Shown here in pieces: positions 4,386 to 64,000 of a stretch of DNA of 64,000 nucleotides. Origin of the DNA: Camelus dromedarius (taxonomy: Eukaryota); NCBI RefSeq assembly GCF_036321535.1, contig NC_087459.1, forward strand, positions 7,378,001-7,442,000. The letters are read 5' to 3'. The notes beneath the pieces are model-generated. The model had not been told where the DNA came from. It saw only the letters and a list, made by a program, of their open reading frames with translations, and ran no database searches. Both the position numbers and the translations under genes were made by a program. The number at the start of each line of letters is the position of its first letter. Within the stretch, counting starts at the first letter, position 1.

Positions 4386-4894
4386 NNNNNNNNNNNNNNN
4401 NNNNNNNNNNNNNNNNNNNNNNNNNNNNNNNNNNNNNNNNNNNNNNNNNNNNNNNNNNNNNNNNNNNNNNNNNNNNNNNNNNNNNNNNNNNNNNNNNNNN
4501 NNNNNNNNNNNNNNNNNNNNNNNNNNNNNNNNNNNNNNNNNNNNNNNNNNNNNNNNNNNNNNNNNNNNNNNNNNNNNNNNNCCTACAGTCATTGGAAATA
4601 TCACAGCTTCAGTTGCATTAATACTTTGGACAAATGGACAGCTGCCCCTCCCCACTAGGGAGCTGTGGGGAGAAGAAGCTGAAGAAACTGGCTCCTGACC
4701 ACCTCAACCCTGGAGCCTCTGGCCAGTGCTCCAGGGGCAGGGAAATCTTTGGGCTGTTGNNNNNNNNNNNNNNNNNNNNNNNNNNNNNNNNNNNNNNNNN
4801 NNNNNNNNNNNNNNNNNNNNNNNNNNNNNNNNNNNNNNNNNNNNNNNNNNNNNNNNNNNNNNNNNNNNNNNNNNNNNNNNNNNNNNNNNNNNNN
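4386..4894. other. Assembly gaps 4386-4581 and 4760-4894, probably within or near the FBXL16 3'UTR end. Further gaps at 45979-46132, 53390-53552 and 53808-54019.
   Basis: Runs of N. Confidence 0.99.
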
Positions 4895-6134: not shown

Positions 6135-9098
6135 CTACTCGATGACGAGGCAGCGGGGCAGGTGCTGCGAGAAGTACTTGAAGAGCTCAGGGGTGGCCCC
6201 AGGGCAGTTGGTCAGCTCCAGCTCCTCCAGCTCCTGCAGCTGCACCAGGCCCGACAGCCCTGTGGTGGTCAGCAGCGGGCAGCCTGCGGCGGGCGGGAGG
6301 AGGGTCGGCGGCTGAGTGGGCGGGGCCCGGGGCTCCGAGAGGCCGAGGCGGGGGGAGGGGGGGGGTCCTCTGACTGAGACCTGGGCCACAGCGAGTCAAC
6401 CCCAGGTATGGATCTGCACAGGGGACCCGGCAGGGCTGGCTTAGTAGGACTAGGTGTGGGTAGGTGGTCACCGTCCAGGAGGGCACCAGGGGGTCTCACC
6501 TGCCAGAGACAAGAGACGCAAACTCCTCATGGCCAGGAGGTGCTTCAGCCCAAAGTCCTGCACCTGCGCGGGAGGGCGAGGCGAGTTTATTTACGTTGGC
6601 TCCCTGAGGGAGCCTCATTCCTGGGGTCAGGCCATAGGGGGCGGGGGATGGGTTCAAAACGGGGGTTTCTCAGCTCCCCACAGAGTCGGTGAGGGCCCTG
6701 GGGACTCCTTTCTCTCCGCTTATGTCGGCCGCTGGGTGTGGGGGGATCCCAGACTTCCCTACAAGATCTGAGTGGGCCGGGTGCAGGTCAGCTGCTTGTC
6801 TGGGTGGGGGATTTCCCCGTGCCCCCCACCTCCCCTGCCTACTCCCCAATCTCCAGAGGCGTGGAGGGCTGGTACCTGGCAGCACCATCGCAGGTAGAGA
6901 CTGCGGAGGGAGGACATTGTGGACAAATAGCTGAGGCCAGTGTCCGTGATGCGTACACACCTGTGGTCGCAACAGAGGGGGGCTGCCCACCTTCAAATCA
7001 CCTCGCCCGGCCCCTCAGTTTCGACCCCTTCCTTCTTTTTCCGGAGTGCCCCTGGCGTGAACTCCCTGCCCCCCACCATGGCCCTGCCCTTTCCATAGCC
7101 CCATCCCAGCCAGACTACTGGAGGCTCCCTAGTTAGAAGGTCCAGTAAGCCTTACCCAGCCCTGCCCTCCACAGCCCCGGGATGGGGGGATACACATACC
7201 TGTCCAGCACGAGCTCCTCCAGGCGGTGCAGATCGCAGGCCACGTACTCGAGAGCCATGTCGGTGATGCGTGGGCACCACGAGAGGTCGAGGCTGCGTAG
7301 CTTGCGCAGGTTCTCGGCTACAAGCTCCACGCCATCATCGGTGACCTTGGAGCAGCCAGAGAGGCTGAGAGCAGTGAGATTGGGCAGGCTGTGCACCACA
7401 TTGACCACACCGTGGTTGGTGATCTCCCAGCAGGAGAGGAGGCGCAGCGTGTGTGTGCTGTGGCCTTGGCGCGCCGTGAAGTAGGCCAGCGCTGTGTCCG
7501 TCACGTGGTAGGCCTGCAAGCTCAGCTCGGCCAGGTTGGGCAGCAGCTGTGAGATGGCTGCAATGGCGTCATCGGCCACATTGATGCAGTCGCTCACGCT
7601 CAGCGAGGTGATGCGAGCACTCAGGCTGGACCACAGCCCAGCCTCGGTGAAGTCGTTGCAGCCCGACAGCTCAAGGCGCACCACGCCTTGCATCTGCTCC
7701 AGCATCACCTGCAGGCGGGCAGGCATGGGGTCAGGAGGCCTCAACCTCGCCCTCGCCTTGGTACAAGCCTACCACCGATTCCCCAGGTGAGCCCCTCCCT
7801 GCAAGGCGTGGTGAGGATGGTAGGAGTCAGGGCAGAAGGAGCCCACTGAGGGGCAGGAAGCTGTGTTCTTGAGCACGTAGATGGTGTAAACATGCATCAA
7901 GCTGTATGCTGACAAGTGCACTTACAGTGTGTTCATTACACCTGAACAACATTCAAAAAAGGAGGCAGGCCACAGGAGATCTGGGAGCCCAGGGCCTGGC
8001 TGGAGTAGGTGCTCAGAGCCGTTGGTGTTAATGGTTTGATTATTAGAGTCTAGGTCCTGCACAGCTGCTCCTCCAACCTCTGCCCCTACTCCTCCTACCT
8101 CCTCCAGCATCCTCCCAAACCAAAGTGGGCTTCAGAGGCATGCAGGGCCCCGAGCTCAGAAGGGCCTCACATTTAATCGGCTACTTTGCTGTCACTGGCT
8201 TGAAATTGTTAGTCATCTTGGAACATGGAACCTGACTTTTCAGTTTGGACTGGGTCCCCCCAAATTATGTAGACAGTTCCCCACCCCAGAGCCATGCTCC
8301 TCCTCAGGGCACCAGCCCCGCCCTTGGCTGCTTTGCTGCTTGGTGCCCAAGCTTCCTCTCGGTACTGCCTCCCACTTCCCCCCAACACATGCTTAGTGGT
8401 TGCTGCCTGCCCCTGCCCCTGATCCCTGCCCCTTCCAGGCCAGTGTCAGGGCGCACCTCCAGGCCAGCGTCAGTGATGGTGGAACGCTTGAGGCTCATGG
8501 CCTTGACACCCTTCTTGGAGAGGGCATAGTTGTCGATGAACTCACAGATGTCCAGGTCGGAGACTCCAACCAGGCAGAAACCCTCAAAGCCGCGTGCTGC
8601 AAAGCCCTGCAGGCTCACAAATTCCTTCTCACCTCCAGGCAGCACTGTGTAGAGCTCCTTGGCGTGCAGCACAGGTGTGAGGCCCGCCCAGAACTTGGGC
8701 TGATAGAGCACACGCCTCCAGGCCTTGCACACCTGAGCCAGCACGCACTTCTCGCAGGCAGAGAAGTACCAGAAGAGGCCATTGAGGATTTTCTCGTCGG
8801 TGGCCAGTGGTGGCCGTTCTGCTGGGGGCCCAGGCACCGGAGCTGAGGCTGGTCCACCAAGGGGGAGCCCCGCCGGGGGGCAAAGGCCCCCGGCCAGGGC
8901 AGCCCGGGGCGGCGGGGCAGCCAGGCTGGGTGGTGGGAGGGAGAGTGGGGGTGGGTGACAGGGTCGGTTCTTGGCAGCTGGTGTGCCCTTGGTGATGCTG
9001 GCTGTGCCCAGGCCGTTGGGCTGGCCTGGCAGCTTCACCAAACCATTGCGAGGCAAGCATGGAGGCTTGGGATCGCCGTTGATGCCCGGGCTCGACAT
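6135..9098 (-). CDS. FBXL16: F-box and leucine-rich repeat protein 16, 482 aa. Coding exons 9098-8457, 7708-7200, 6960-6876, 6563-6500, 6283-6135.
   Basis: [29 protein letters not shown]..., Pro-rich tract, F-box ([28 protein letters not shown]), LRRs, ends ...[10 protein letters not shown]. Exon sum 1449 nt, all GT-AG. The acceptor at 9112 gives 14 nt of UTR before the ATG. Confidence 0.97.
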
Positions 9099-9289
9099 CT
9101 TCCTCACTCGGTCTGCAGACAGGATCCAGGAAGGGGGAGTGAGTTTGCTGCCGGCGTAGAGCTGGGCTCCTTTCCATCCCTGGGCAACCCTTCCCACATC
9201 ATTCCCAGAACCACCCAAAAGAAGGGGTCTGAGTGCAAGTCCCACCCCCCAGCTACAGGAGGGCAGGGCTGGTCATGACCACGACGCTC

Positions 9290-37308: not shown

Positions 37309-40300
37309 CTACCACCTGATGCTAAGGCCAGAGCCAGCCTTCTCCACTGCGTGGTAGCTTGTGTGCAGCAGGCGGCTGGCCCTCTCTGAGCCCTCACCCT
37401 GCAGCCAGTGCCCATACAGCTCCTGGATCCCGGGCGCTTCCTCTGGCACCTCTGTCCTGACCATGCTGTACAGCCTCTCAACCTGCTGCAGGAGCTCCTT
37501 GCCAGGCCTGTCGGGAGCCTTGAGCTGGCCTCCGCCATTCAAGCAGCCTGTGGCAGAGAAGGACAGGCAAGAGTATGGTCATGGGAAGGGCATCGTCACC
37601 TGGGGGTCCCAGAGGGCCCCACCCTGTCTGCGCACCTGCGGGGCAGGCCATGACCTCCACGTAGTGGTATGGGCAGCGCCCCCGCTTGAGTTTCTGCACC
37701 AGGTTCTGGATGTTGCGGAAGCCATAGGCCACAGCAAAGTGCAGCAGGACCTGACCCTCCCTCTCCAGAGTCACCTCCTGCAGGTCCTTGTTCCTGGGGG
37801 AGCACAGACCCGGTTGTCCACACAGTGTGCCCAGTCCCTCCTGGGTCGGGACAGTGACAGGGGAGGGTAGAAAACTCACTTCCACGAGCTGGGCGGGTGA
37901 CCTTACACCCAGCCTTGGTTTCCTGGTCTGACATGGAGGCCCCAGCCCTCCCACCGAGGACATGGGGACACACCCTGTGCCAGGAACACCATCCTGCCAC
38001 CACGGGCTGCTCAGGGCCCTGGGCCACCATGCTGTGGGCAAGGACATCGACTCCTACGATGAGGAGACTGAGGATTAGAGACTTTGGCCCTTTCATGTGA
38101 GCTTCCTGGTGCCCCAAGGTCCACGCCAAGCCCACCCTGATATCCTCCTCCATGCCTACTGCAGTGAGGGGACCTGGAGCTCCAGCTGCTCCGTTCCCCA
38201 AGCTCCAGCTTTTGCCACTGACCTCAGGGGTCTGTAGGTGACCTCAGTCACGTGGATTCCAAAGAGCTCCTGGGCCGCATGCCGGAACACGTGCTCCAGG
38301 TAGCCCCCTGAGCCCCCACCCCGATGGCTGGTGGGCTCCTGGGGGGACACGCTGCTGTACCTGGGGAGGAGGGCATGGCCTCAGGTGGTAGTGGGGCTGC
38401 TGTCTGCTGAGGCTTCTGGGTAACCTCTGTCTCTCACGTTTGAGAGCATTTGCTTTCTAAGTGGAAAATGAGTCATGGACCACAGGGGCTTTGTGGCCCT
38501 GTCAGGAGGCAGCTCATGGGGAAAGGGCTGTCCCCTCCGTCATGTCCCCTGTTCTGGGGAGCTGAGACCTGTATGAAGTTGGGGTCAGCTCTGATGACTA
38601 TCAGCCAATTGTCCACAGGCCTGTCTCATGAACTCAACTGTCTCTGTGGACACCGAGACATACCACGAGGCAGAAGCAAAACCAATCAGAAAGGAGACAT
38701 AGCAGAGAAGGCAGGAAGGGACAGTGCCTAGCCCCACATTGTCACATCTGCCCACCAGGACAACCATGACCCTAATGTCTTGAGCACCCTGATGCTGGAA
38801 ATACTTCCTGCCCCTCCACTGTGGCAGGTGGTAACTCACAGACTGTCCAGGGGAGCTGGCTCCAGGTCTGACAGTGAGACTCCTTCCTCTTCCAGCAGCT
38901 TCAAAACTTCTCCTGTGATGAAACCACAGAACACGCTCTTCAGCTGAATCTCAAGGAAAACAAGAGTCAGTTCAAGAACACCCACGTCACCTGCATCCAC
39001 AGCAATCTGTGACCTGGACACAGAGGCCACGTGTCCACCCCTGGCTCGTGGGTAGAGGCTGAACCCAGCCACAGAGGCAGGGTGGATGCACCGTCCCCAG
39101 GGCGCCTCACAGTGTGCCTGGAGATGGGCAGGGCACTGTGTCCCTGGAGGGCAACCATCCCTCAAGCTATCTGGCTGCTGGAAGGGTGTTCATTTCTCTG
39201 CCTTTTAAGCACTTGAGAGCCTGTGAGGCTGCTCAACTCAGAGATGGGGTGACCGACGTGAGCCAGAGGGGCTGTGCCAGGGCCTGCACTGGGGACACAG
39301 CACCAGCTGGGCTCAGGGATCTGCACCTGTTGTGATGACACAATCCACATCGCGCGACTGGTGTTCCTGGCTGAAAAAGTCGGGTCTGGAAGCTTCCAGC
39401 TTTTTGTCATAGCAGGGCATCACCGTCACGTGGTAGATCTTGTCAGGGGTCAAACGCTGCATGGAGAAACGCGACTGTGGAGCAGCTGCCCGACCCGGGC
39501 AGCAAAGAGGCCAGGCTGAGGCAGGGGTGACAGCACAGGCACAGCAGGGAACACAGTTTGGCGTGTGGGTCCATGAACTCACTTTTAAGGAAACAACACA
39601 GACTCTCAACAGCAGCAGGGTTCCCATTACCTGTTGCTGGGCGAAGAAGTCCTTGACCAGGGAGCCCATGACCTGCTGCGGGGACCGGGCAGTGCTAATG
39701 TAAGGGAGGAGGAAGCTCCCATGGGTCTTCTCGGCGTAGCAGATCCAGCCTGAGGCCGACATGGGGAGCACATGGGGCTGTGACGTGAAGGTTCTGGGGG
39801 TAGACACACTTGCACAAGGAGTCAGGGTCCCCGAGGAATGGCCCCACTCTGCTGTCCCTGTCACGTCTCTAGCATCCCTGCAATCACTCCTCAGGGAACT
39901 GAAGTGACTGCAGGTGACTCTTGGGCTCCTCCCACCCCCCAGCACTCCCGTCGCCCACATCCAGGTGTCAACATCCTGTCCCCAGTGTGCACACACCTGG
40001 GCAGGCGGAAGTCAGCACAGGCAAGGCCTGCCTGGAGTCCGCCTGTTCTCGGAATCGCTGCACAAACTCTCGCTGGCTCTCAAGGAGACTGAAGTTCCGT
40101 GAGAAGGCGGTATCAAACACATAGTGTGCCCCTGGAAGGAGAGCACCACCTCACCCCTAAGAAGGACACCCGGAGTGTGAGGTGCTGCCAACCATGCCCC
40201 CCAGGAGTGTCACAGGACCCGCTGGCATTGTGGCCAGCCTGGATTCCTTGGGGCTCACCTCCTCTGAGCTCAGTGGCCACCAGGACCAGGCCATACCCTA

Positions 40301-45805: not shown

Positions 45806-46652
45806 ACAGGGCTAGAGGCTGCCACTCAAGCTGGCCACTCCAAGGTGTTCCTGAGAGGCCCAGGCAGTAAGTACACCCTGGTCTGTCCAGTTTCAAGCCA
45901 TTGGCCGAACTGTCCCTGAAGGAGTGCCTGGGTGACTACCAGAGTCAGTTTCTGGTTAAAAAAAAACAGAGCTCTCACNNNNNNNNNNNNNNNNNNNNNN
46001 NNNNNNNNNNNNNNNNNNNNNNNNNNNNNNNNNNNNNNNNNNNNNNNNNNNNNNNNNNNNNNNNNNNNNNNNNNNNNNNNNNNNNNNNNNNNNNNNNNNN
46101 NNNNNNNNNNNNNNNNNNNNNNNNNNNNNNNNCTGCCTGCTCTGGGTGGAGCCAGGATTGGGGACTTTTCAGCCCCTTGAGGGTCTTTTATTAACTCACA
46201 GCCATGTCTGTCCCTAGAGACCCTCAGCTCTTATGCCAGCATTACACCTTGCCTCTGGTGTGCCCGCTCTCACGTTTTGCAAATTGTTTCATCATCATCA
46301 TTATCAAGTTTTCACCATGCACTTCCCATGTGCAATACCAGAGTTTACACACGTAGGGGAACGCAAGGGCCAGATGAGGACACAGGGAGGGGCCGGAGCT
46401 CCTAAGCCCAGGCTGGTGGGCCTGTGCAGCTGTCCTGACGCTGTGGCTGTGTGTGGGTATCCCTTTCCGTGAACTGGAGCAGGTGCAGAGCTCAGCCTCT
46501 GCTTGCTCTGGACATGCCCACAAGATCCACTCTGGCCAAAGCCGACCATCTGATCGCTGGATGGGAGCAGCAGGGTTTCCCCCAAGGTATGTGGAGCTGC
46601 TGACCCCTCCTGCCAGTTGGCCTCAGAATTTCACCCTGCGAGGGACTGGACC

Positions 46653-50369: not shown

Positions 50370-51729
50370 CTGTATAGCCTGTATTCTCTCAGAACTGGGG
50401 ACATTCTGGGAGCCTGAGGACAGTGGGGAAGCAAAGTCACCTCAATGGTCTTGAGGGGTGGCCCCCCCCCCACAGCCCGGCCACTCACCATCTGAAGCTG
50501 TCCTGGAACATGGTGGGGGCCTCGCAGGCGGCAAGGGGCTGAAGAAGGACCTGCCATGTGGGGTTGGCAATGCCAGGCAGGGCACAGGAGTAGCCCGAGG
50601 GCAGGATGGGAGGGGCCGAGAGCACCACCCCAGCTGCCCAGGATGCCTGCCATGCCTCGAGGCTCACCTGGTGAGCTCCAGGAAGAGCTGGTCCAGGGCC
50701 TGGTCCACATCCAGCTTCCAGGTGATGGCACCTGAGGTCATAGGGAAGGTGGCCAGCTGCGCCAGCACAAGTCTACCCAGGACCTGGGCCTGGGGTGTGC
50801 ACTGCCTGTCAGCCTGGCCGTCCTCTGGTGTCTGTCCTCCCACTTGTCTGCCCGAGGCACCCCACCCTCGCGTGCCCGCTCCCTGTGCTCCCCACCGCTG
50901 ACCCTTGGGTTCGAGCCCAGCAGGTGCTTAGTTGGACACGATGCTGTTTCCCAGGTGCATATCTAGCCACAGCTGGGAGTTTGCACCCTAGGGCCACTCA
51001 GATGTGTCGAGGGGAAGGGGTGCCCAGGGGCCCCTTCTCAGCCCATGCTGGGGTTCAGATATCTGCAAAGGAGGCAGCCCTCAAGCCTAGGACCTGGGAT
51101 GGGGCCTTCAGGGTCCAAGCCTGACCTCTGACTCTAGCCAGGGCTGTCCCCAGTGACTGCCCCAGGGCCTGGGGCTGTGGTGGGGTGGGGGGCCAGGGGA
51201 TTAAGGTGGCTCTGCCCACCCACCCTCACCCCCAGACACCTGCAGGTCAGGACATTTCTGCAGATGCTGTGGGTGCCGGTTCTGGGAGCAGCTGGAAGAC
51301 AGTGAGGGGGCCCTTCCTTCTAGGGTCAGGGCATGTGTGGGTGGGGTCACCACCCAGGCCTCCTCAGACCCAGTGTCAGGGCTTCCCATGCCTGCCTGCT
51401 CCTACATCTGCTGGAAAACGTTGTGGGAGGTGTCCACCAGGATCTGGGCCAGGACAGTGCTGTCCATTACCAGCACAAAAGGCCACAGGGGAGCCTGGTG
51501 ACAGAGTGCCACGTCCTGGCTGCACGGCTCTGGGATGCTGGGCCCCAGGCAGCAGGAGAGGTCCAGCAGGGGGTGACTGGGCAGTGCTGGGCAGCCAGGC
51601 ATGAGGAACAGGAGGCAGCTGGGCAAATGGCAGCCCCACGGCCTTCTGCACCCCCAGCCCCATCATTGGCCAGCACACTCAAGTACACAGCCAGCAGAAC
51701 CAGCTGAGTTAGGGTTCGGAAGTGGTGAC
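48192..51729 (-). pseudogene. Unidentified multi-exon gene relic. Exons 51729-51240, 51062-50668, 50550-50489, 50172-49904, 49294-49224, 48999-48876 (stop); AATAAA at 48197-48192.
   Basis: Five consecutive GT-AG junctions are phase-compatible (0,2,1,0,2). GC3-rich codons in part. In-frame stops at 51404, 50990 and 50930, and a probable frameshift near 51640-51660. I do not recognise the protein. Confidence 0.6.
50341..50369. repeat. (TG)n microsatellite, 29 bp
   Basis: Read directly. Confidence 0.95.
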
Positions 51730-53669
51730 CTGGAGCAGAGGCCCACTGTATGTCTGCCCCAGGCTCCAAGCCAGCGGACTCTGGTCCCCTTTTCTATTTT
51801 GCCCAGACTGGGGGACAGGTTTTTTTTTTTTGAGAAATCGGAGCAGGAGCCAACCTACTGAGCTTTGGGCACGGCTCCTGTCCCCTGGGAATGTGGGTCC
51901 TGCCAGGAGACCTGGCTGGCTGCCCTTGGCTTCATGGGGATTACTGGATCAGAGCTACATGGGTCTACACTGGCAATGGAAACAGCCAAGCCAGAAGAGA
52001 TTATTTATCCCACTTCTTAGGTGTGGCTGGAGGTGCCCTGATGGGAGCAGGCTCAGCCAGGTGGAAAAAAAAACGCAAAAAGCTTTTCTTTTTTTTTTAA
52101 TTGCAGAATAAACAGCCCCTAAATTGTTTTTTTCACTCAAAAATGGTGAACAAGCCAAGGGTAGCTGGAGGGCAACTCCTGACAGGACAGGCAGGGGGTG
52201 TGCGTGATGGGTAGGCGAGCAGGAGGTGGGCTGTGCACCAGGACTGCACCATGAGGAAAGGCTAGAGGGGCCCCCCCAGTGGGCTGCAGGGACTGGGCAC
52301 GAGGTGGGAACCAGGGCAACTGTCATCTTTCCACATTTTCTTACATTTCTTTAAAGAGCATCACATACTTTTGCATACTAGGAAAAAAAATCTATTGCTG
52401 GGTTTGTCTCAGCATATGGTCACCAACACCTGCTGTGATCCACCTTTTGAATTTTGTAAATCTCCTGGTTTGAGTTCGAATTTCTAGGGTTCCTGCAAAG
52501 GTTGAAGCTGGCTTCACAAGCCACTAGCTCCTCAGTCTCCTGAGAATTCCTGCTTGCCTCCTGGGCCCCCTTCCTATCGGTTTCTGGCTTTTCTTGTTGA
52601 TGTGCGGTTCTTCACGTGTCCTCCCAGTTTCTGAACCACACATGGCATTGTCAGCTGTTAGACATCTCTTCTCTCCTTCTGACAGCTGCCTGTTAGCTGC
52701 CGATTTGTTTATTGCATAGGAATCCTTAACTCCAGTGACGTCACGTTCACCCACCGGCTCAGGGCAGGTTCTGTTGTGGAGGGTCTCCACATCTCCCTGC
52801 GTTCCTCAGGCCCTCCTTTTTCTGTCCATCTAATCCCCTCGGTGGTACACAGGTCTTTAATGCACCCGGTATCCAACTTGTCTCATGTAAACAAGGGCTC
52901 TTGCTTTACTTTTCTTCACTCAGGGCGTCCCATTTTCCAACACCATCGGTCCTGTGGATCTGTCCCTCCCCCGACACTGCTCTGCAGAGCCACCTTTTCC
53001 ATGAGTGAAGCTCCATGTGCACAGGGTGTATTTTCCTTGAAATCTGTAGACTGTGCCTTTGTTTCTATCTTAATCACTGTGGTGATGTCTTAATATCTGG
53101 CAGCTTGCCTCTTCGCCTCTTCTGTTTAGTTCATGGATATTTATTCCCTTTATGTTCAATGAATCTGTTGAGTTCTTGAAAAACAATTCTCCTAGGGTTG
53201 AATTGACTGTTAGGGTTGAACTGACTTTATAGGATAATGTCAGGGGAACTGACACTTAATCATGCTGGGTTGTTCCAGAAAAAATTCTGTGTTATCAGAT
53301 AGGCTGATTTCTATGAATCTACTTTGTGGATTTCATTGTTATTAGAAATTATACATTTTCCTATTAAATTTGTTCTGATTGCTGACAGANNNNNNNNNNN
53401 NNNNNNNNNNNNNNNNNNNNNNNNNNNNNNNNNNNNNNNNNNNNNNNNNNNNNNNNNNNNNNNNNNNNNNNNNNNNNNNNNNNNNNNNNNNNNNNNNNNN
53501 NNNNNNNNNNNNNNNNNNNNNNNNNNNNNNNNNNNNNNNNNNNNNNNNNNNNGCACCCAATAAACAATAATTCCCACTTCCCTTGCCTCCCTGGTAACCT
53601 CTGTTATACTTTCTGTCTCTATGGGTTTCCCTAATGTGGACATTTCATATAAATGGAATCACACCATAA

Positions 53670-53789
53670 TTTTGTTGGGGGGGGGCAGATATTAGGTTTT
53701 ATTTATTTATTTAATGAGGTACTGAGGATTGAACCAAGGACCTTGTGCATGCTGAGCACACGCTCTACCACTGAGCTGTACCCTCCCCC
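53670..53789 (-). mobile_element. tRNA-derived SINE (camelid Vic-1-like)
   Basis: Reverse complement reads ggggagggtacagctcagtggtagagcgtgtgctcagcatgcacaaggtccttggttcaatcctcagtacctc, followed by an A/T-rich tail. Confidence 0.8.
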
Positions 53790-54275
53790 GACCATTCTTG
53801 TGTATCTNNNNNNNNNNNNNNNNNNNNNNNNNNNNNNNNNNNNNNNNNNNNNNNNNNNNNNNNNNNNNNNNNNNNNNNNNNNNNNNNNNNNNNNNNNNNN
53901 NNNNNNNNNNNNNNNNNNNNNNNNNNNNNNNNNNNNNNNNNNNNNNNNNNNNNNNNNNNNNNNNNNNNNNNNNNNNNNNNNNNNNNNNNNNNNNNNNNNN
54001 NNNNNNNNNNNNNNNNNNNTTTCAGTCCCTGTTTCCAAATCTTTGGGGTGTATCTTAAATTGCTGGGTTATGTGGTTATTCTGTGCTTAAGTTTTTGATG
54101 AACTACCAGACTGTTTTCTACAGCCCCTGCACCATTTTACATTCCTACCAGCAGTGCACAATGTAACAATTTCTCCACATCCTTGCCAACACTTGTTATG
54201 CTATTGATTTTCAAATCAATGTTTTCTGGTATAATTTATGCACAATGAAGGCATCCATTTAAAGTGTACAGTCCA

Positions 54276-54406
54276 GGGGGGAGGGTATAGCTCAGCAGTA
54301 GAGCATGTACTTAGCAAGCTCAAGGTCCTGGGTTCAATCCCCAGTGCCTCTATTTAAAATAAATAAATAAACCTAATTACCACCCCCTACAAATAACATT
54401 TTTAAA
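54276..54406 (+). mobile_element. tRNA-derived SINE (camelid Vic-1-like) with 15-bp target-site duplication
   Basis: ggggagggtatagctcagcagtagagc...ggttcaatccccagtgcctc plus (AAAT)n tail. AAAGTGTACAGTCCA at 54261-54275 and AAAGTGCACAGTCCA at 54407-54421. Confidence 0.85.
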
Positions 54407-57228
54407 AAAGTGCACAGTCCAAAGAGCTTGGGTGGTTACACACCCCATGAAATCTCCCCCCAGTAAAGACACAGAACATTTCCATCACCCCCAAAAGTTT
54501 CCTCCCTGCTTACTCCTATGAACAGGAATCTTTAATTTTGATGAAGCTGCCTGGCCCCTGGCCACCACTGATGTGCTTTTTGTCATAATAGATTAGTTTG
54601 CTGTTTAACATTTTTATAGAAACAGAATCATACATCACGTCCTCTTTGATGTTGGCCTCTTTCAGTCAGCATGATGATTTTGAAATTCATCCTCCCCGCA
54701 TCAGTAGTTTGTTCTTTCTTACTGCTGACTAGGACGGCATCATGTGAATATATCATGTTTTGTTTATCTGTTGATGGGAAGTTGTTTTTCCCCATTTTGG
54801 TATTGTGAGTAGAGTTGCTAGGAATATTCACGTACAAGTCTTTCTGTGCACTTATTTGTTTCTCTGGACCAGTTACTTAGGAGGAGAATGGCTAAGTTGC
54901 ATGGTTAATTGTATGTTTAGCTTAGTAAGAAAATGCCAAACAGAAGTGCCCATATTACCTTGTGCTCCCGCCAGCAGGGTTCGAGACTCCCAACTGTCCC
55001 ACATCCATGACACACTTGGCCTTGTCAGTGCCTTTAAATGCTGTCATTCTGGTGGGTGTGTGTCTCCTTGTGGATTTGATTTGCATCTCCCCAGGGAGTG
55101 GTGGAGTTGGGCATCTTCTCATGAGCTGATTGACCATTAACCGTTAACTTCTTTTGTAAAGTGTCTATTCAAGTCTTTGGCTTGTCTTTCAAAAACAGCT
55201 TCCCTGAGATAGAATTTCCACACCATGTAACTTACCCATTTGACGTGTAGAATTCAATGTTAGGATATACACAGAGAAGAGCTTCCTTTAATCTGAGTCA
55301 TCGAACGCCGGATGCCTTTGGAATTTACCTTTTGCTTCTGACTTGATAATGTCTCTTAACAAAGTCAACCTAACATTACAAGGGAGAACAGAACTTACAG
55401 GCAAAACATATAATGCTTTACCGTCATCTTAACAACAACAAAAATAATGTGTTTCATATACTTCTTATGCAATCAGAGTTAAAACCAGACATGACCCCTC
55501 CTTTCCCAGGCAGACCACAGTCGCTGTATCTTTTGAGCTCAGACTGCAGTTCCTCCTTGCAAGCACAGAGGAAACTGCCACATCTCACAATCCATTTAAC
55601 TGTGCAATTGGGTAGCTCCCACCTAACCCTCAATTGGAAGTGATGGATCCGGTTAAGTCCATCCAGGGAATTTTTAAATTTCAGATTTTTCATTTTTAAT
55701 ATTTCCTGTTTGGTTCTTTAGAAAATACTGTCATTTTTTCCTACCTCGGCATTCACAAGAGCTAATTTTCCATTCCCTCGATGTCTAATAATGCTAATAA
55801 CTATCTTAACTTGGCATGGATTCTCTTCCCTGGAGAATGGGTCACAATCTCCCAGCTCTCCCTATGCCAAGTCACAAATGTTGTGACTATTTTATTGTGT
55901 GGACACTGCATTCTGTTATATTCCTACAAAGACTGTTGATGCCTCTGTTTTGGTGGACAATGAGCTCAGTCAGACTTGAGCTGTAACCTCTGCCACCCCG
56001 AGGAGGGCAGAGGTCAGTCTTGGTCAGTTTGTAATCTGAGCTGTTTCCCGTCTGCCCTGCACACGTGGCTCGGGGGTCAGCAGGAGGTCTAGGTGGCATC
56101 CATGCACAGAATTTGGGGTTCCCTCCTCTGGCTCTCTCTTTTTCAGGGTTCTCCATTCACTCTCTACTGTCTGGGGATTCTGGGCTCCTTCCTCTCTTCA
56201 GCCAGAAACGTGGTGTGATTTCTGCTGGAGTCTAAGTGCTCCACCCAATAAAGCCCCTCACACAAAGGGAAACACACCCCATGCTGGTATCAATTCCCAC
56301 CTGAAATCTGTCTTGTTTCCTTCACACCCCAGAGCCCTTAGGGAATTGGTTTTTTACATCTTGTCCAGAAGTTTTCAGCTGTTCTCTGCGAACGGAACTT
56401 TTTTCCAGGGCACTTACTCTATGCATAAGTTGGTTCTTATACCTGGCAGCCTTCCTGAATTCTGTATCAATTAGCATTTGGCTCCACTGCACGTAATAGA
56501 AAACCCAGCTCATGGAAAAAGGTCAGAGACGGGGCAGCTGTACATACTTGGATCAGCCAACAGAAACCTTTGCAGATGTGAAATGCAGAGACAGACTTCA
56601 CACAGGGGATTCTTGTTCACCAAAATGTTGGAGCACACAGGGTTGGGGTGGGCAGTGAGGGAGCCACAGGGACTCCATCTGCCGGGGTGCACACCAAAGC
56701 CATGGAGCAAAGTCAGATCGGCATGCGGATGCTGGCATCCGGCCAGCACAAAGACACACACACTGTCTAACCTTGTAGCCACAGCAGCAGGAAGGTGGCT
56801 TCCACCTCCCACCTGGGAGACAGCCGGTACCTCAGTAGGTGGGCTCCTTCAGCCCCACATCTGACCACCCCCATGGTGATGTGCAGGCCAAACGGCCCTG
56901 ATCCCGGAACTCACTCCCGGGAGTCACATTCTGGCCAAGTAGCCACCACCCCGAACCTGCTGACCTTGGGCTTGGAGGGGTGGCCGACGGAGACTCTCAT
57001 GGCACCAGCTGGGAGAACACACCTTGCCTTGCTGTGTGATTGTGACCTCCCTGCAGCAGCGAGCCTCAGTTTCCCCACCTGAGAAATGGGAGAGTAAGAC
57101 CCTAAGAGGCAAGGGCGTGGCTCTACACACACCTGGTATGTGGGTCAATCTGCCCGAGGCTCCCACACCCGCCCACAGTGGGAGAGGCAGAGGCAGCTCT
57201 CCACCCCACAACCCTCCCCAGGACTCCA

Positions 57229-57246
57229 TCCTCCCACACATTCCTG
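57229..57246 (+). promoter_or_regulatory. CanScript-like MSLN enhancer (Sp1-like half plus MCAT/TEAD)
   Basis: TCCTCCCACACATTCCTG with MCAT CATTCCT at 57239-57245. It is 16/18 to the human CanScript as I recall it (CCCACCCACACATTCCTG), and lies 2.4 kb upstream of the MSLN ATG exon. Confidence 0.55.
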
Positions 57247-59665
57247 TGGCCTGAGTACTGCCACTCCCAGCTGCCGGCCAGTGCCTCATTTGTTTGCCTC
57301 GACAGACCTCAGAGGCTGCCAGCCTCTTGCTTCCCAGTTGATGAAACTGAATCAGAGGAGGCTCAGAGTTGGCTGATCACCCTGGAACATCAGAGTCACC
57401 ACAAGCAGGGTCCCCCAGATCCTGTGGAGGTGACTGGGAGCTCCCAGCCCAGGGTCCAGGCTCATGACCATGGCCTCATCCGTGTGGAGTGGGGTCACGT
57501 GGGAGGGCAGGCCTGCGAAGGGGAATGGGGGACACCTCTGTCAGCACCTTTAGCCAAGCAGCTCTGGGTAGGAGCAGGGATTAAGTGGAGGCTGGTACTG
57601 GGACCCACCCTGCAGGGGACCCTGGCCAGCCCCACACAAGCAGGCTGGGGTGGTGGGGAAACCCCACCCCTGCCCCCTCTGTATGCTCCCTCCCTAGTTC
57701 CCACTGCACTTGGGGAGCAGTGAGGATCACCTCCCCTGTTCTCAGAGGGCAGTGCCCTCAGGGTCAACTCTACTCTAGCCCTAGCTGCTTCTGACATGCT
57801 GTGTGACCCCGGGCTGGCCACACAACATCTCTGTGCTTAGGGCAGATAAAATGACCCTGTATCCAAGACCCTAAATCTGTGATCCATGCCCCTGCCCACC
57901 CTCACCAGAGGAATCTGAAGCTGGCAGGGAATGTGGTCTAAATTCATTTTCCATCATTTGAAGGCCAGACTTTGGGGACTGTGGTTGAGCTGGGGTGGGA
58001 GGTTCTGGAGGTGGGTAGGACAAGTGGGGCGGGAGAGAGCTTCAGCCAGTGTCCTGCAGCTGCACACCTGCTGGAGGCTATGCACTGATGACCCCTGGGC
58101 TCGGGGGTTGGAGCTGACCATTCCTCTGTCACAGTCACAGCTACCTCTGTCTCACACACCACTCTGCTCAGCTGGTGGTCCACTCGGATGCCAGACCCCA
58201 TAGGCTAGCAGGGCAGGGACAAGAGGGCAGGAGCAGGGCCAGCCCTCTCTGTGGCAGGCCCCACCCCTAGGTCCTGGGTAGGGCTTGAATCACCTACCCC
58301 GGTGTGTATCAGCGTCCGTGTAGGGCCCAGCACACAGTAGGCACTCAGCGAGTATGAGGTGGTTAATGAGTGACAGGGGGCCAGGGGAACACTGGTCTTG
58401 GAGGGCTCAGGGTTGGAGATGGGACCATCCCAGCCCAGAAGGGGAAGCATCAGAGCAGCCTTGCATAGGGAGACAGAGTGCCATAGGGGACTGTTCCCTT
58501 GTCACACAAATATGCCTGCCCTAGACTGGCCGAAACAGATGTGGCTTCTGCAGGTCACACCTGGGCTACTCTGGAAGCTGCAGCTCCAAGACAGCTGAGG
58601 TGCATCTGTGGCCCAATCTGGCCTACCTGGGGGTAGGTTGCAGATTCCAGGGCCTATAGTGGGAGACCCCAGCTAGGGCACTAGGGGGGGTCCCTGGTTA
58701 CATGGGACGGGGGTAGGGGCTGAGAGGAGACAGCAGGGGCTGCACAGCCTTTGCCTGGCCTCACCCACCCCACAGGTAGGGGCCCCAGTGAGCGGCCCAT
58801 TCTCCAGGGCACTCCCCCAGGCTGGGCTCTTTGCCTGGCTGAAAGCGGTTGCTGAGACATAAACGTGCCTCTCCCCCATTTCTGAGCTGGGGTGGGGCCC
58901 GACACAGGCCTTGGCAAAGGTTTGGGGGAGGGTATGGCTCCACTGCCCTTGGCTGTAGGCGGCCTCCCACTCTGGGTCTCTCTGGGAGGGCAAGAGTGGA
59001 AGGTGGTTCGGTTTCCTGCAAGCCCCCCTCTTTAGGGAGCAGCACCCCACCCACCTTCCACTCACACTGGTCCAGGCCTCTGTTTCCGGAAGGACCTCAG
59101 AAGGGAAACCAGGATGGCAGGTGGGCTGTGGCGGCCTCGTCCACCTAGGAGGGCCCTGGGATTACACAAAGCCAGGCACCTGTGGCTGTGGGTGGGCGGG
59201 GAGGACGGCCATGCTGCAGGTTGAGGGGTCAGCGTGACCCCCAGCCTCCAAACTGCTCTGTCCCTCTGCTTGGGGTGGGGACACCAAGGCCAGCCAGGCC
59301 CTGCTTCCTTGCACACGAAACTCTCCCGCCCTGCCCCATGGGGAGAGAGGATGGGCGCCCGCCTGGGCTCTCACAGCTGAGGGCCAGGCTGACTCAGACC
59401 TGACCCCTCTGGCAGAAGGGCAGGTTTCCCGGAGGAGGCGGGCCAGGCAGGCTGGTTGGTCCTGAGAGGAGGGCCAGAGGCCACACACACAGACACTGCC
59501 GCTGCCGGGGAGGCCTGTGAAGGTTTGAGCTGGTAGCCCTCCAGGGCCCTGAGACCCCTGCAGCCCCACAAGGCCCCACACTGGCCTGGGGCAGTATCGT
59601 GGGTGCAGGGAAGCGGTGGGGAGGGGAAGAAGTGGGGACATCAGAGTGGCTGTTCTCCACAGACC

Positions 59666-62600
59666 ATGGCTTTGCAGACTGCTCGAACCCCACTGGAGTC
59701 CTGTGGGACCTCAACTCATGGCAGCCTCCTGCTCCTGCTTCTCGGCCTCGGTGAGTAATGACGATGAGCTGCAGCAAAATACTGGAGTGCCAGAGAGTGT
59801 CCAAGGGTAGCTGTGGGTCCCTAGGGCTCAGGGCCTTAGGAAAGGCGCTACCTGCTCTATGCTTCCTTCCCTGGCTGTGGACAGTGCCCCCCGACCCTGC
59901 CCTAGGCAGGTGCCTCGAATCCTGGGCAGATGCTCTGAATCTAAGTAGGTGCCCTGAGCCCAGACAAGTGTCTTGAATCTCATCAGGTGCCTCAAGTCCC
60001 AGGCAGGCTGTCAGCCATATCTCTGCCCTGAGAGGTGACTATGTCCGGCACCCATGCTGGACTGCGGTGACCTACGGGGTTGGAGGTTGAGGCAGGGTGG
60101 TGATGGGGGCACAGGCCAAACTGAGGGTGCCCATGAGACAGGTGTCTGACTGCCCTGAGCAGCAGGGGCCCAGGAGGAGGCCTGTGCTCCCTGGTGTGGT
60201 GTTGCAGGACGTGATATCGTGGGGTGCAGGGGCCTAACCCTCTGCTTCTACACCCATGGGGTGTGCATGGGGCTGGGAGGGGCCAGCTTTGTCTCCTTCC
60301 TCGCCAGGGTGGGGGACTGCAGCAGTCATTGCTGGAAGTCCCTGGCCATCCCCTTGAGCCTGGTGTGCCCTCCCCTGCAGGGTGGATGTTACCTTCCAGG
60401 GCCCAGGCTGCAGACACGGGATTGGTAAGGCCCCTCTGGGGAATCAAAGAGGGTTTTCTGGCCCTGGGTGGGGGTCCTTGAGCGCCAGGCTTCTCTGCTC
60501 AGTCCCAGCGCTGCTTTGTTCTCAGGGCCTCACGACTTCATGGCTGCAGCACACCTCCAGGGACCAGTCCTGGCCACAGCCTGAGCTGACCGTCATCATC
60601 CCAAGGGCCCGGCGGGGCACAGAGAGTGAGCACAGTGCCCAGCCCCATTAGGCGTCAGAAGATGTAGGGTGGGGGCTGGCATGTGATGTCTCACCTGCCT
60701 GCGCCTGCGGCCCTTCTTGTCAATCATGATGACCCAAGAGAGTGAACAGAAACACCCCATTTTGCTGATGGATAAACTGAGACCCAGAGAGGTCATGTGT
60801 TGCCCAGGGTCTCAGCGTGGGTGTGGGAGGAAGAGGTTGATGGGAGAAGCCCAGTCCCGAACCCCCTGCCTACCCCTGCAGAGAAGGCCTGCCCCCCGGG
60901 GTGGAAAGCCCAAGTGGTGGATGAAAAACTCATCTTCTACGAGGAGTGGGAGCTGGAGGCCTGTGTGGATGGGGCCCTGCTGGCTGCTCAGATGGACCGG
61001 GTGAACTTGATACCTTTCACCTACCAGCAGCTCCACATTTTTAAGCGCAAATTGGACGAGGTAGTTCAGGACTCGGGTTCCCACCTGCCTGCCATAGCTC
61101 GGCTTTCCCAGCTGCCCGGGGAGTGGCTGTGGCCCTCATGGTCACTTTCCGGGGAAGTTCTACCCACAGGGATACCCAGAGTCCCTGATCCAGCACCTGA
61201 GGTACTTCTTCCTTTCGGTCACCCCCGAGGACATCCACAAGTGGAATGTGACATCCCTGGAGACCGTGAAATCTCTGCTCGAAGTTACCAAAGGACACAA
61301 GATGGATGCTCAGGTGACCAGCTACCAGGGTGGGGAGGGGCAGACACAACATGTGAGGTTGTGCAGGTCCAAGGGGATACATCTCTCGCTGCCCCAAGCC
61401 ACCTAGTGGCCTCTTCCCACAGGTGGCTGCCCTGATTGCCCGCTATGTAGTGAGAGGGGGCCAGCTGGACAAGGCCACCCTGGAGACCCTGGCCACCCTC
61501 CACCCTACCTACCTGTGCCTTCTCAGCCCTGAGCAGCTGGGCTCCATGAGCCTCAATGTTGTCTGGTGAGTCCAGGGCTCTGTCAGGTATTGTGGGCGTG
61601 CCACGCTCCCAGCTCACTGCCTGGCCCTGTGCTACCTCCCCAGGGTGACCAGGCCACAGGACCTGGATGCGTGCAGCCCACAGCAGATAGCCGTCCTCTA
61701 TCCCAAGGCCCGCATTGTCTTCAAGAACATGACAGGGTCTGAATACTTTGAGAATATCAAGCCCTACCTGGGTGAGCCAGGGAGGACATGGCTGGGGAGG
61801 GGAGGGTGATGCCTGAAGCTCCCACATCCATGCTGCCAGATTCCCCCCTCACTGGGCAGCCTGTTGGCCGTGTGACCAAAGTGTACCCTGTGTCCCTCCA
61901 AGTGTGTATAGGCTGAGATCCTGTGAGTTTTGGGCACCTCCAGCCTTTCTTCCAACCCAGAGGGTCAGGTGGTCACCAGGCAAAGGAATTCTTTGGGAAA
62001 ACTCTCAGGAAAGGAAGTGGCTTCTGGTAGCCTGTGGTCAGAGGGTGAGACTAGGGGCTGTTGCAAGCTCTCACACTTAGGGGGCCCTCTCCCGTGGGCA
62101 GGTGGGGCCCCCATGGAGGACCTGCGGGCTCTCAGTCAGCAGAACATAAACATGGACCTAGCCACGTTCAAGAAGCTGCAGACAGAGGCTGTGCTGGTAC
62201 AACCACAGAGAAGGGGGGCATCTAGGGGTGGGGCTTTTGAGGGGTAGCCAAGGCCCTCTCCAAAGTCTGGAGGGGCCAAGGCAGGGTCTGGATGGGGAGG
62301 CATAGGGTGGGTGGTTTGGACACAGTAGAGGAAAGCAACCTTCTGGGGAAAGGCAAGTGGACCCTGACTGCCGTCTGGGGGCCCTGGCAGCCGCTGACCA
62401 TTGCTGAGGTACAGAAACTTCTGGGCCCAAACCTGGTGGGCCTGAAGGCTGAGAAGGGGAACAGCCTCATGCGGGACTGGATCTCCCGGCAGTCGCAGGA
62501 TGACCTGGACAGCCTGGGGCTGGGGCTCCGCGGCGGCATCCCCAATGGCTACCTGGTTCTGAACTTCAGTGTCCGAGGTGGGCTGGGGTGGCCGGGCGGG

Positions 62601-62742
62601 TGGGGTCGGGGCAGAGTGAGGGGGAGGGTGTGAGTCTTCCCCTCTCCGCACAGAGGCCCTCTCGGGGGGCCCCCACCTCCTCGGACCAGGACCTGTGCTC
62701 ACTGTGACCTCAAATCTGCTCCTGGCCTTCATCCTGAGCTGA
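59666..62742 (+). CDS. MSLN: Mesothelin, short form lacking the MPF core, 401 aa. Exons 59666-59750, 60381-60424, 60526-60625, 60882-61060, 61158-61313, 61423-61565, 61644-61771, 62102-62196, 62391-62577, 62654-62742.
   Basis: Signal peptide MALQTARTPLESCGTSTHGSLLLLLLGLGW; furin site PRARR; KACPPG..., WELEACVDGALLAAQMDRVN, KWNVTSLET, GGIPNGYLVL; GPI-type C-terminal hydrophobic tail. Exon sum 1206 nt. AATAAA at 62834-62839. Confidence 0.9.
60755..60810 (+). mobile_element. MIR fragment
   Basis: cccattttgctgatggataaactgagacccagagaggtcatgtgttgcccaggg. Confidence 0.6.
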
Positions 62743-63291
62743 GCCCATTGCTCTGGAGGCCCTGCTGTGGAGGCTCTGCCTGGCTGGGAGCAGGCCTGGG
62801 TGGTCCCTGTCTGACCTGAGGGCACCGAAGCACAATAAAAGAAGACCCATACCCCCCTCGCAGTGGTGCCCCCTGGTGTTTTGAGGACTGGGTGGGAGGG
62901 CCCCCGACGGCTGTGACCCCATAAGGCATGGTTCCCTGGGTTGCAGCCCCCTCCTGTTTGCACCTGGAAAGAGGAGGGACTCCAGGCAGGAGGGCTCTTG
63001 GGACTTTCCTGCTGCTGTTTCCCCTGAGGCCAGGCCAACACTCAGTGTGGCTTCTAGTGACACTGTCACCCCAGGGGACTCTCTGGGAGTCCTGACCCCA
63101 GCTAAGAGGGTCTCTGTGCCCTCCTTAGGCCCAGAGCAAGGGAACACAGGCAGGAAGATCCCCTCGTCCTTTATTCAAATCCATCAGCAAAATCAGCCCC
63201 TTTGCCAACCCCTGTTCTTCATCTGGAAGAGGCCAGAGGGCAGGGCAGCGTCTCCCTCACTGGCTGGGGAAGTGACCCTGGGCTCAGGTCC

Positions 63292-63602
63292 TCAGTCTGG
63301 CTCCAGGTCCTGGGAGCTGGGTGTGGGCAGGGACCGGCCCTGTAGGCCCCAGGACATGGGGCGTGGCCAGGTCCCCTGGGCCTGGTGCCTGTATCTTGGC
63401 CTGAGTAGTTGTCCAGCTCCACTTAATAGCCCCAGTTTTCCTGCATGTGGTGCTGGGGCAGTGCTGCCTTCAGAAGCTATGGTGCAGGTGCCCCATGAGT
63501 GGTCCCAGCTAGGCTCCAGGGTGCCCCAATACAGCAGCCACAGGAGGCCTGAGGGCAGGGCTATGGCAAGTAGCAGGTACCCAAGGTGGGCTGGAGGGCT
63601 GC
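63292..63602 (-). CDS. MSLNL: Probable terminal coding exon of mesothelin-like protein (the rest of the gene lies beyond the window)
   Basis: Strong acceptor ctccctccttgttccatctacag|GC. Open frame (G)SPPAHLGYLLLAIALPSGLLWLLYWGT...LEPD* resembles the MSLNL C-terminus as I recall it. Syntenic position; minus-strand AATAAA at 63175-63170. Confidence 0.6.
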
Positions 63603-64000
63603 CTGTAGATGGAACAAGGAGGGAGCACCCTTCAGTCTTGCTGGGTGCCCCCCGTTCCCACTCAAGGCTGTCCCACAGCCTCCGAGGCCTGGGCAGCCCC
63701 TGCCCTAAGCTGGAGGCTCACACCGTCCCTGTGGGCGGGAAGAGCAATGAAGACCCCCATGCACAGCCACTCTTTTGGGCCCAGACAGGGACCTCATAGC
63801 TTCCCTACCCTCCACCTTCTGCAGCTCAGTGGATTTGGGGGAGACAATTGTGTCCTTCACTAACTCGGCAGGTGATGCAGGGGAAAGCCAGTGTCACCCA
63901 GATGTCATCCGAGGAGGCAGATGGAAAGAGTTGGCCAGCAGAGAATGAGATTGGGTGAAGACGAGAAGCTAGTAGCAGTCAGGGGTCTGCAGAGGGCCCA

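Follow-up and report, generated by a model that had tools for sequence, protein, structure and literature searches.

A 64,000-nt stretch of the dromedary genome (Camelus dromedarius, RefSeq assembly GCF_036321535.1, contig NC_087459.1, positions 7,378,001 to 7,442,000; hereafter the window) was analyzed with respect to its mesothelin gene, MSLN, which is found here without the coding sequence for the core of megakaryocyte potentiating factor (MPF). The gene extends from 59666 to 62742 on the plus strand and consists of ten coding exons with canonical GT-AG borders throughout, which together give 1206 nt of coding sequence (401 codons plus the stop codon) with no internal stops. An earlier reading of the same letters (hereafter the original prediction) had proposed that six exons encoding most of MPF were lost in frame between a 44-nt exon and the exon with the furin site, and that proposal was followed up here.

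Coding exon 1 (59666..59750, 85 nt) carries the start codon and the signal-peptide region, covers positions 1-28 of the Pfam profile PF06060 (Mesothelin), is followed by a GT donor at 59751 and coincides with the start of the RefSeq protein XP_010989431.3. The second exon (60381..60424), the last before the proposed ancestral deletion, is 44 nt long, as it also is in whale, pig, donkey, bat, panda, pangolin and lemur (38 nt in beaver). The intron that follows (60425..60525, 101 nt) has a GTAAGG donor and a pyrimidine-rich acceptor ending in gttctcag, and contains no N. It leads into a 100-nt exon (60526..60625; PF06060 positions 268-300) that aligns to residues 265-303 of full-length MSLN and combines a remnant of the C-terminal pro-region with the furin site, its product being 33 residues that end in RARR-GTE. 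The furin-type motif R-X-[K/R]-R ahead of the mature N-terminus was read from the sequence as RARR (60604..60615, residues 70-73), in alignment with the RFRR or RLRR of primates, rodents, hare and colugo. The phases of the 85-, 44- and 100-nt exons, including the phase 0 end of the second, the gap-free intron between the latter two and the peptide beyond it were as the original prediction had described them.

Mature mesothelin is encoded by an exon series of 179, 156, 143, 128, 95, 187 and 89 nt, which recurs in pig, panda and beaver (last exon 86 nt in beaver); lemur shares the series from 179 to 95 nt, and its annotated last exon is 321 nt. The first mature exon (60882..61060, 179 nt; PF06060 positions 302-360, E=9e-31) is homologous to the MUC16/CA125-binding region and matches chain C of PDB entry 4F3F as well as other human mesothelin chains (E~1e-24). 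In the alignment to 4F3F chain C, the Y, W and E of the motif IFY..WELE are conserved and correspond to human Y318, W321 and E324, the residues of human mesothelin that bind MUC16/CA125 (PMC11417096). Next come a 156-nt exon (61158..61313; PF06060 positions 362-412) of equal size in pig, donkey, bat, panda, lemur and beaver, exons of 143 nt (61423..61565) and 128 nt (61644..61771) that were placed by the gene model, PF06060 and cross-species exon sizes, a 95-nt exon (62102..62196) placed by the gene model, tblastn and cross-species exon sizes, and a 187-nt exon (62391..62577; PF06060 positions 536-596). The last coding exon (62654..62742, 89 nt including the stop codon) matches the final ~28 residues of full-length MSLN, and an AATAAA polyadenylation signal was read at 62834..62839, 92 nt past the stop codon. 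An L-rich hydrophobic stretch at residues ~20-30 and the hydrophobic C-terminal tail both align with other mesothelins and are presumed, on sequence grounds, to be the N-terminal signal peptide and the glycosylphosphatidylinositol (GPI) anchor signal, respectively.

The hand-built 401-residue model, which agrees with the ten stop-free exons and the roughly 401-residue precursor originally predicted, was identical at every residue to XP_010989431.3, annotated as mesothelin [Camelus dromedarius]. When the 187-nt exon was searched against 1.84 billion representative proteins, the top match was a 405-residue mesothelin isoform X2 from Camelus bactrianus, which has the same junction and whose cluster includes XP_010989431.3. 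Seven exon translations were compared with the PF06060 profile (624 positions, cut-off 25.8 bits); six of the seven scored above the cut-off (29.3 to 107 bits, with the best at the E-value given above for the first mature exon), and exon 1 alone scored 25.7 bits, just under it. Profile positions ~44-267, the ~224 positions of the MPF core, have no counterpart in the camel gene. Ten full-length MSLN proteins from primates, rodents and colugo were also used as tblastn queries against all 64 kb of the window (E<=10); these recovered the listed exons and gave no match to MPF-core coding sequence anywhere, as had been claimed for the locus. A match of the MPF region at 50455-50631 (minus strand, E 0.09-0.6) was dropped as compositional, with a stop codon inside it.

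Annotated camelid isoforms in RefSeq range from 377 to 409 residues, and the differences among them are confined to later exons, where alternative acceptors are used or part of an exon is skipped. One alternative acceptor at 61170, 12 nt downstream of 61158, drops the residues F-Y-P-Q; the acceptor that retains them (ending ggggaag) is weak compared with the downstream one (ending cccacag). In isoforms X1 and X2, an acceptor at 61399, 24 nt upstream of 61423, adds eight residues, and some isoforms omit 24 codons of the 156-nt exon. An older Camelus ferus model joins exon 1 straight to the 179-nt exon and skips the 44-nt and 100-nt exons; this join is in frame (phase 1 to phase 1), so that a transcript without the pro-region remnant or the furin site is formally possible.

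The camel gene is the orthologous MSLN, located between CIAO3/NARFL and an MSLNL-type gene that is arranged tail-to-tail with it. The latter, a second PF06060 gene (MSLNL) on the minus strand, lies just past the window end, and a PF06060 minus-strand gene lies downstream in Camelus ferus and in all eight other species' loci for which a downstream gene was listed. Mesothelin-family genes do occur in tandem (MSLN beside MSLNL), and the gene described here might then be a truncated paralogue, with a full-length, MPF-bearing MSLN elsewhere in the genome. Against this stand the orthologous position of the gene, the presence of no second copy within the window and the outcome of a search with the lemur MPF core alone, which scored the 8000 best candidates and returned 74 proteins; the named ones came from primates, colugos, rodents, a hare and opossum, and none was Laurasiatherian. 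Taken together, a truncated paralogue was considered very improbable.

An artefactual explanation was that the MPF exons are present in the camel genome and were lost from the assembly between 60424 and 60526. In its favor is only that the first reading relied on a single assembly and that GC-rich, subtelomere-like regions are often misassembled. The window contains five runs of N (4386-4581, 4760-4894, 45979-46132, 53390-53552 and 53808-54019), all of which are upstream of 54020 and far from MSLN, and none falls in or near the intron at 60425-60525. In the independent, older Camelus ferus assembly GCA_000311805.2, window positions 55667-64000 were recovered as one 8354-nt alignment at 99.17% identity without N, colinear across the intron. 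Window positions 59500-60900 were likewise colinear across this intron with MSLN in blue whale, pig, donkey, greater horseshoe bat and giant panda, and the Malayan pangolin locus aligned to the same interval in two pieces. Exon sizes in these species were obtained by splicing each species' annotated protein exactly onto its own locus, and in all six the series 85/44/100/179/156/143/128/95/187/89 was found with small variations, with a junction intron of 86-106 nt. The same short intron and breakpoint are present in these six other species, which represent five orders.

In pig, the junction is also present in messenger RNA. A contig from Logan (run DRR831831, 1752 nt) aligned to the pig genome as ten blocks corresponding to the exons; in it, the furin-site exon follows immediately on the 44-nt exon, and the frame of 403 residues is uninterrupted. 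It ends in AATAAA and a poly(A) tail at the place equivalent to the camel AATAAA. Because of the ten exon blocks, the open frame, the polyadenylation signal and the tail, the contig represents a mature mRNA. In dog, a mesothelin transcript without MPF has been amplified (PMC11417096). Assembly collapse, which the original prediction had named as the finding that would overturn it, is excluded by the Camelus ferus assembly, the colinearity in six species and the pig mRNA.

In species that retain MPF, the missing exons can be counted directly. Mouse lemur and beaver have six extra exons of 50, 121, 86, 130, 194 and 91 nt between the 44-nt (38-nt in beaver) and 100-nt (106-nt) exons, which amount to 672 nt or 224 codons and preserve the frame; all six are absent in camel. 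Opossum has the same six exons, with sizes of 50, 121, 89, 130, 194 and 91 nt (675 nt), and its MPF region is 49% identical to that of lemur over the full length. The six human exons of about 666 nt that the original prediction had cited were thus right in kind, judged by lemur, beaver and opossum. Since opossum has these exons and a similar MPF, the long form is ancestral and the short form derived. The reverse polarity, in which the short form is ancestral and six exons were gained in Euarchontoglires, has in its favor only that parsimony is untested with just two eutherian superorders; it conflicts both with the opossum exons, of nearly equal sizes and encoding a recognizably similar MPF, and with the chimeric nature of the Laurasiatherian intron described below, and is refuted by the marsupial outgroup. 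The opossum (Monodelphis domestica) mesothelin annotation (locus 2001-39223) is itself unusual in that it specifies 1103 residues over 37 kb, places 14 coding exons ahead of those for MPF and shows a faint Stereocilin (PF21058) signal; either marsupial MSLN is far longer at its N-terminus or two genes have been fused in the annotation.

The intron at 60425..60525 gave a split match to two separate introns of lemur and beaver, in keeping with the chimeric breakpoint that the original prediction had suggested looking for. The opening ~50 nt could be aligned with the first ~49-50 nt of intron A, the one downstream of the 44-nt exon, and the final ~45-50 nt with positions ~27-79 of intron B, which is 73-79 nt long and lies directly ahead of the furin-site exon. 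Homology to lemur intron A stops at intron position ~50, and homology to intron B starts at positions ~49-57 in the better-preserved species (whale, pig and donkey), which places the breakpoint at approximately 60474..60480 in the camel. A MAFFT alignment of the whole short introns placed intron B of lemur and beaver poorly and was not used for this purpose; the breakpoint ranges were taken from another alignment and from pairwise local alignments. Measured on the lemur locus, the deleted segment corresponds to ~1.9 kb, and on the beaver locus to ~2.3 kb. The chimeric structure is common to all seven Laurasiatherians examined, and the deletion was accordingly a single event on their common stem.

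The identical breakpoint in camel, whale, pig, donkey, horseshoe bat, panda and pangolin is common to Cetartiodactyla, Perissodactyla, Carnivora, Chiroptera and Pholidota. Mesothelins of ~400 residues with an identical junction were found more widely, in ~35 Laurasiatherian species that include camelids, hippo, whales, ruminants, pig, an equid, rhino, carnivores, many bats and pangolin. The original prediction had left open how widely the loss is shared among cetartiodactyls; it is not confined to that group.

Dromedary MSLN is accordingly best read as a gene that carries an ancient genomic deletion, dating from the Laurasiatherian stem, of six consecutive MPF-core exons with the reading frame left intact, a reading to which a probability of roughly 95% was assigned. 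The deletion, of ~1.9-2.3 kb in lemur and beaver coordinates, removed the six coding exons (672 nt, 224 codons) and brought together the first ~50 nt of the intron downstream of the 44-nt exon and the last ~50 nt of the short intron ahead of the furin exon. What remained was a functional intron of ~100 nt, and the frame was kept. The repair may have been an intron-to-intron end joining, as the literature proposes. The resulting precursor of ~401 residues would begin with a signal peptide, followed by a vestigial pro-peptide, ~37 residues left over from both pro-region ends and closing with RARR; a normal mature mesothelin with the MUC16-binding residues and a C-terminal GPI signal would complete it. 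By analogy with human mesothelin, the signal peptide would be removed, furin would cleave after RARR and the mature protein would be GPI-anchored; cleavage would then free only the ~37-residue peptide and not MPF. The in-frame loss of MPF with the mature part intact, as first proposed, is supported by genomic, mRNA and annotation evidence across species, and the anchoring of that part is predicted.

Three considerations weigh against this interpretation. Transcript evidence for the junction comes from pig and dog, and the RefSeq camel models are predictions. The sampling here was without Eulipotyphla, Afrotheria and Xenarthra. The protein search with the MPF core was word-seeded and scored the 8000 best candidates, and finding no Laurasiatherian MPF protein there is not absolute proof of absence.

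The deletion is already known. Whether it had been reported was left open in the original prediction; a deletion of MSLN exons in Laurasiatheria was published in 2011 (Kim & Hahn, Int J Mol Med 27:289-293, as summarised in PMC11417096), and the product is annotated in RefSeq, where XP_010989431.3 (401 residues) shows no difference from the window model. According to that summary, the MPF portion is missing in cow, pig, horse, panda, hedgehog and dog and retained in Euarchontoglires, and the loss occurred hypothetically via non-homologous end joining of introns. As far as the summary goes, the camel case involves the same gene and the same loss of MPF and differs in nothing essential; camelids are not named in it, and the dromedary adds at most a further species to those known to have this allele. 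The deletion is Laurasiatheria-wide rather than specific to camels or cetartiodactyls, and the present analysis independently reproduces the 2011 conclusion and extends it to camelids, cetaceans, hippo, bats, rhino and pangolin.

Compared with the human and mouse MSLN precursors (MPF plus mesothelin, ~622-626 residues), the camel protein belongs to the same PF06060 family and has the same downstream exon sizes, and the position of the furin motif, the MUC16-binding Y/W/E and the hydrophobic C-terminal tail all correspond. It differs in lacking the six exons (~224 residues) of the MPF core, whereas cleavage of the human and mouse precursors frees an MPF of ~31 kDa. Canine mesothelin cDNA likewise encodes a precursor without MPF in which the signal peptide, furin site, disulfide, glycosylation sites and GPI site are kept (PMC11417096). 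The dog, a member of Carnivora, has the furin motif RDRR as opposed to RARR in the camel, and its annotated isoforms have a longer N-terminus.

Rough Nei-Gojobori ratios of nonsynonymous to synonymous substitution rates (dN/dS; species pairs were pooled and are not independent) were ~0.40 for the mature part both within Laurasiatheria and between lemur and beaver. For the remnant pro-region of only 37 codons, they were ~0.67 within Laurasiatheria and 0.58 between lemur and beaver. Mesothelin evolves fast, and with the value of ~0.67 for the remnant it could be argued that the locus is a decaying pseudogene that only seems intact. An open frame and all splice sites are nonetheless kept in ~35 species of five orders, the mature part is as constrained as between lemur and beaver, and the gene is expressed in pig and, per PMC11417096, in dog; the pseudogene explanation was therefore given next to no credence. 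The estimates gave no indication of pseudogenisation or of a clear shift in constraint, but a remnant of 37 codons is too short for confidence.

The furin motif itself varies among species with the short form. Camels, ruminants, hippo and rhino have RARR, and most carnivores have RDRR. A weaker R-X-X-R is left in alpaca (RAWR), in whales and donkey (RTQR/RAQR) and in a few bats, and the motif is lost in pig (RPQG), pangolin (RACQ) and most bats (RALQ/RALL). The form R-[FL]-R-R is kept in all six full-length, MPF-bearing species examined. Comparison of these motifs suggests that constraint on the furin site was relaxed once MPF was gone. More tentatively, and with the odds rather against it, the paths taken by the furin site and the ~37-residue pro-peptide remnant after the loss of MPF may have differed among Laurasiatherian lineages. 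The lineage-specific fate of the motif is possibly the one unreported detail in this analysis; if it is both true and unreported, mesothelin would no longer be furin-processed in several orders, and the cleavage site would, if so, have been maintained mainly for the release of MPF.

The locus amounts to a clean natural domain knockout, in which a whole mammalian superorder has been without MPF for tens of millions of years while mature mesothelin was kept. The mild phenotype of Msln-knockout mice (PMC11417096) is in line with this. For veterinary and comparative oncology, it means that MPF assays and antibodies to the N-terminal part of the precursor are bound to fail in dogs, pigs, cattle, horses and camels. 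The check was also of value in itself, in that an inference made from sequence alone proved accurate and the artefact explanation could be excluded.

Pfam scans of long open frames were used to identify the other genes in the window, all on the minus strand: a WDR24-like gene with WD40 exons (3-2574), an FBXL16-like gene with F-box/LRR exons (7136-9272) and CIAO3/NARFL, a gene with an Fe-hydrogenase domain (exon 39316-40011) that the Camelus ferus annotation extends to ~56875. Among 20 long open frames scanned outside MSLN, 15 gave no Pfam match, as expected for GC-rich non-coding frames. The order WDR24, FBXL16, CIAO3/NARFL agrees with the human order at 16p13.3. The 5' end of CIAO3 is ~2.8 kb from the MSLN start codon, and the two genes are arranged head to head. 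An AT-rich stretch at 52001-56000, in or beside the CIAO3/NARFL region, has a GC content of 0.37-0.41 as compared with ~0.6 elsewhere, includes the last two of the N runs given above (53390-53552 and 53808-54019) and is probably an interspersed-repeat insertion.

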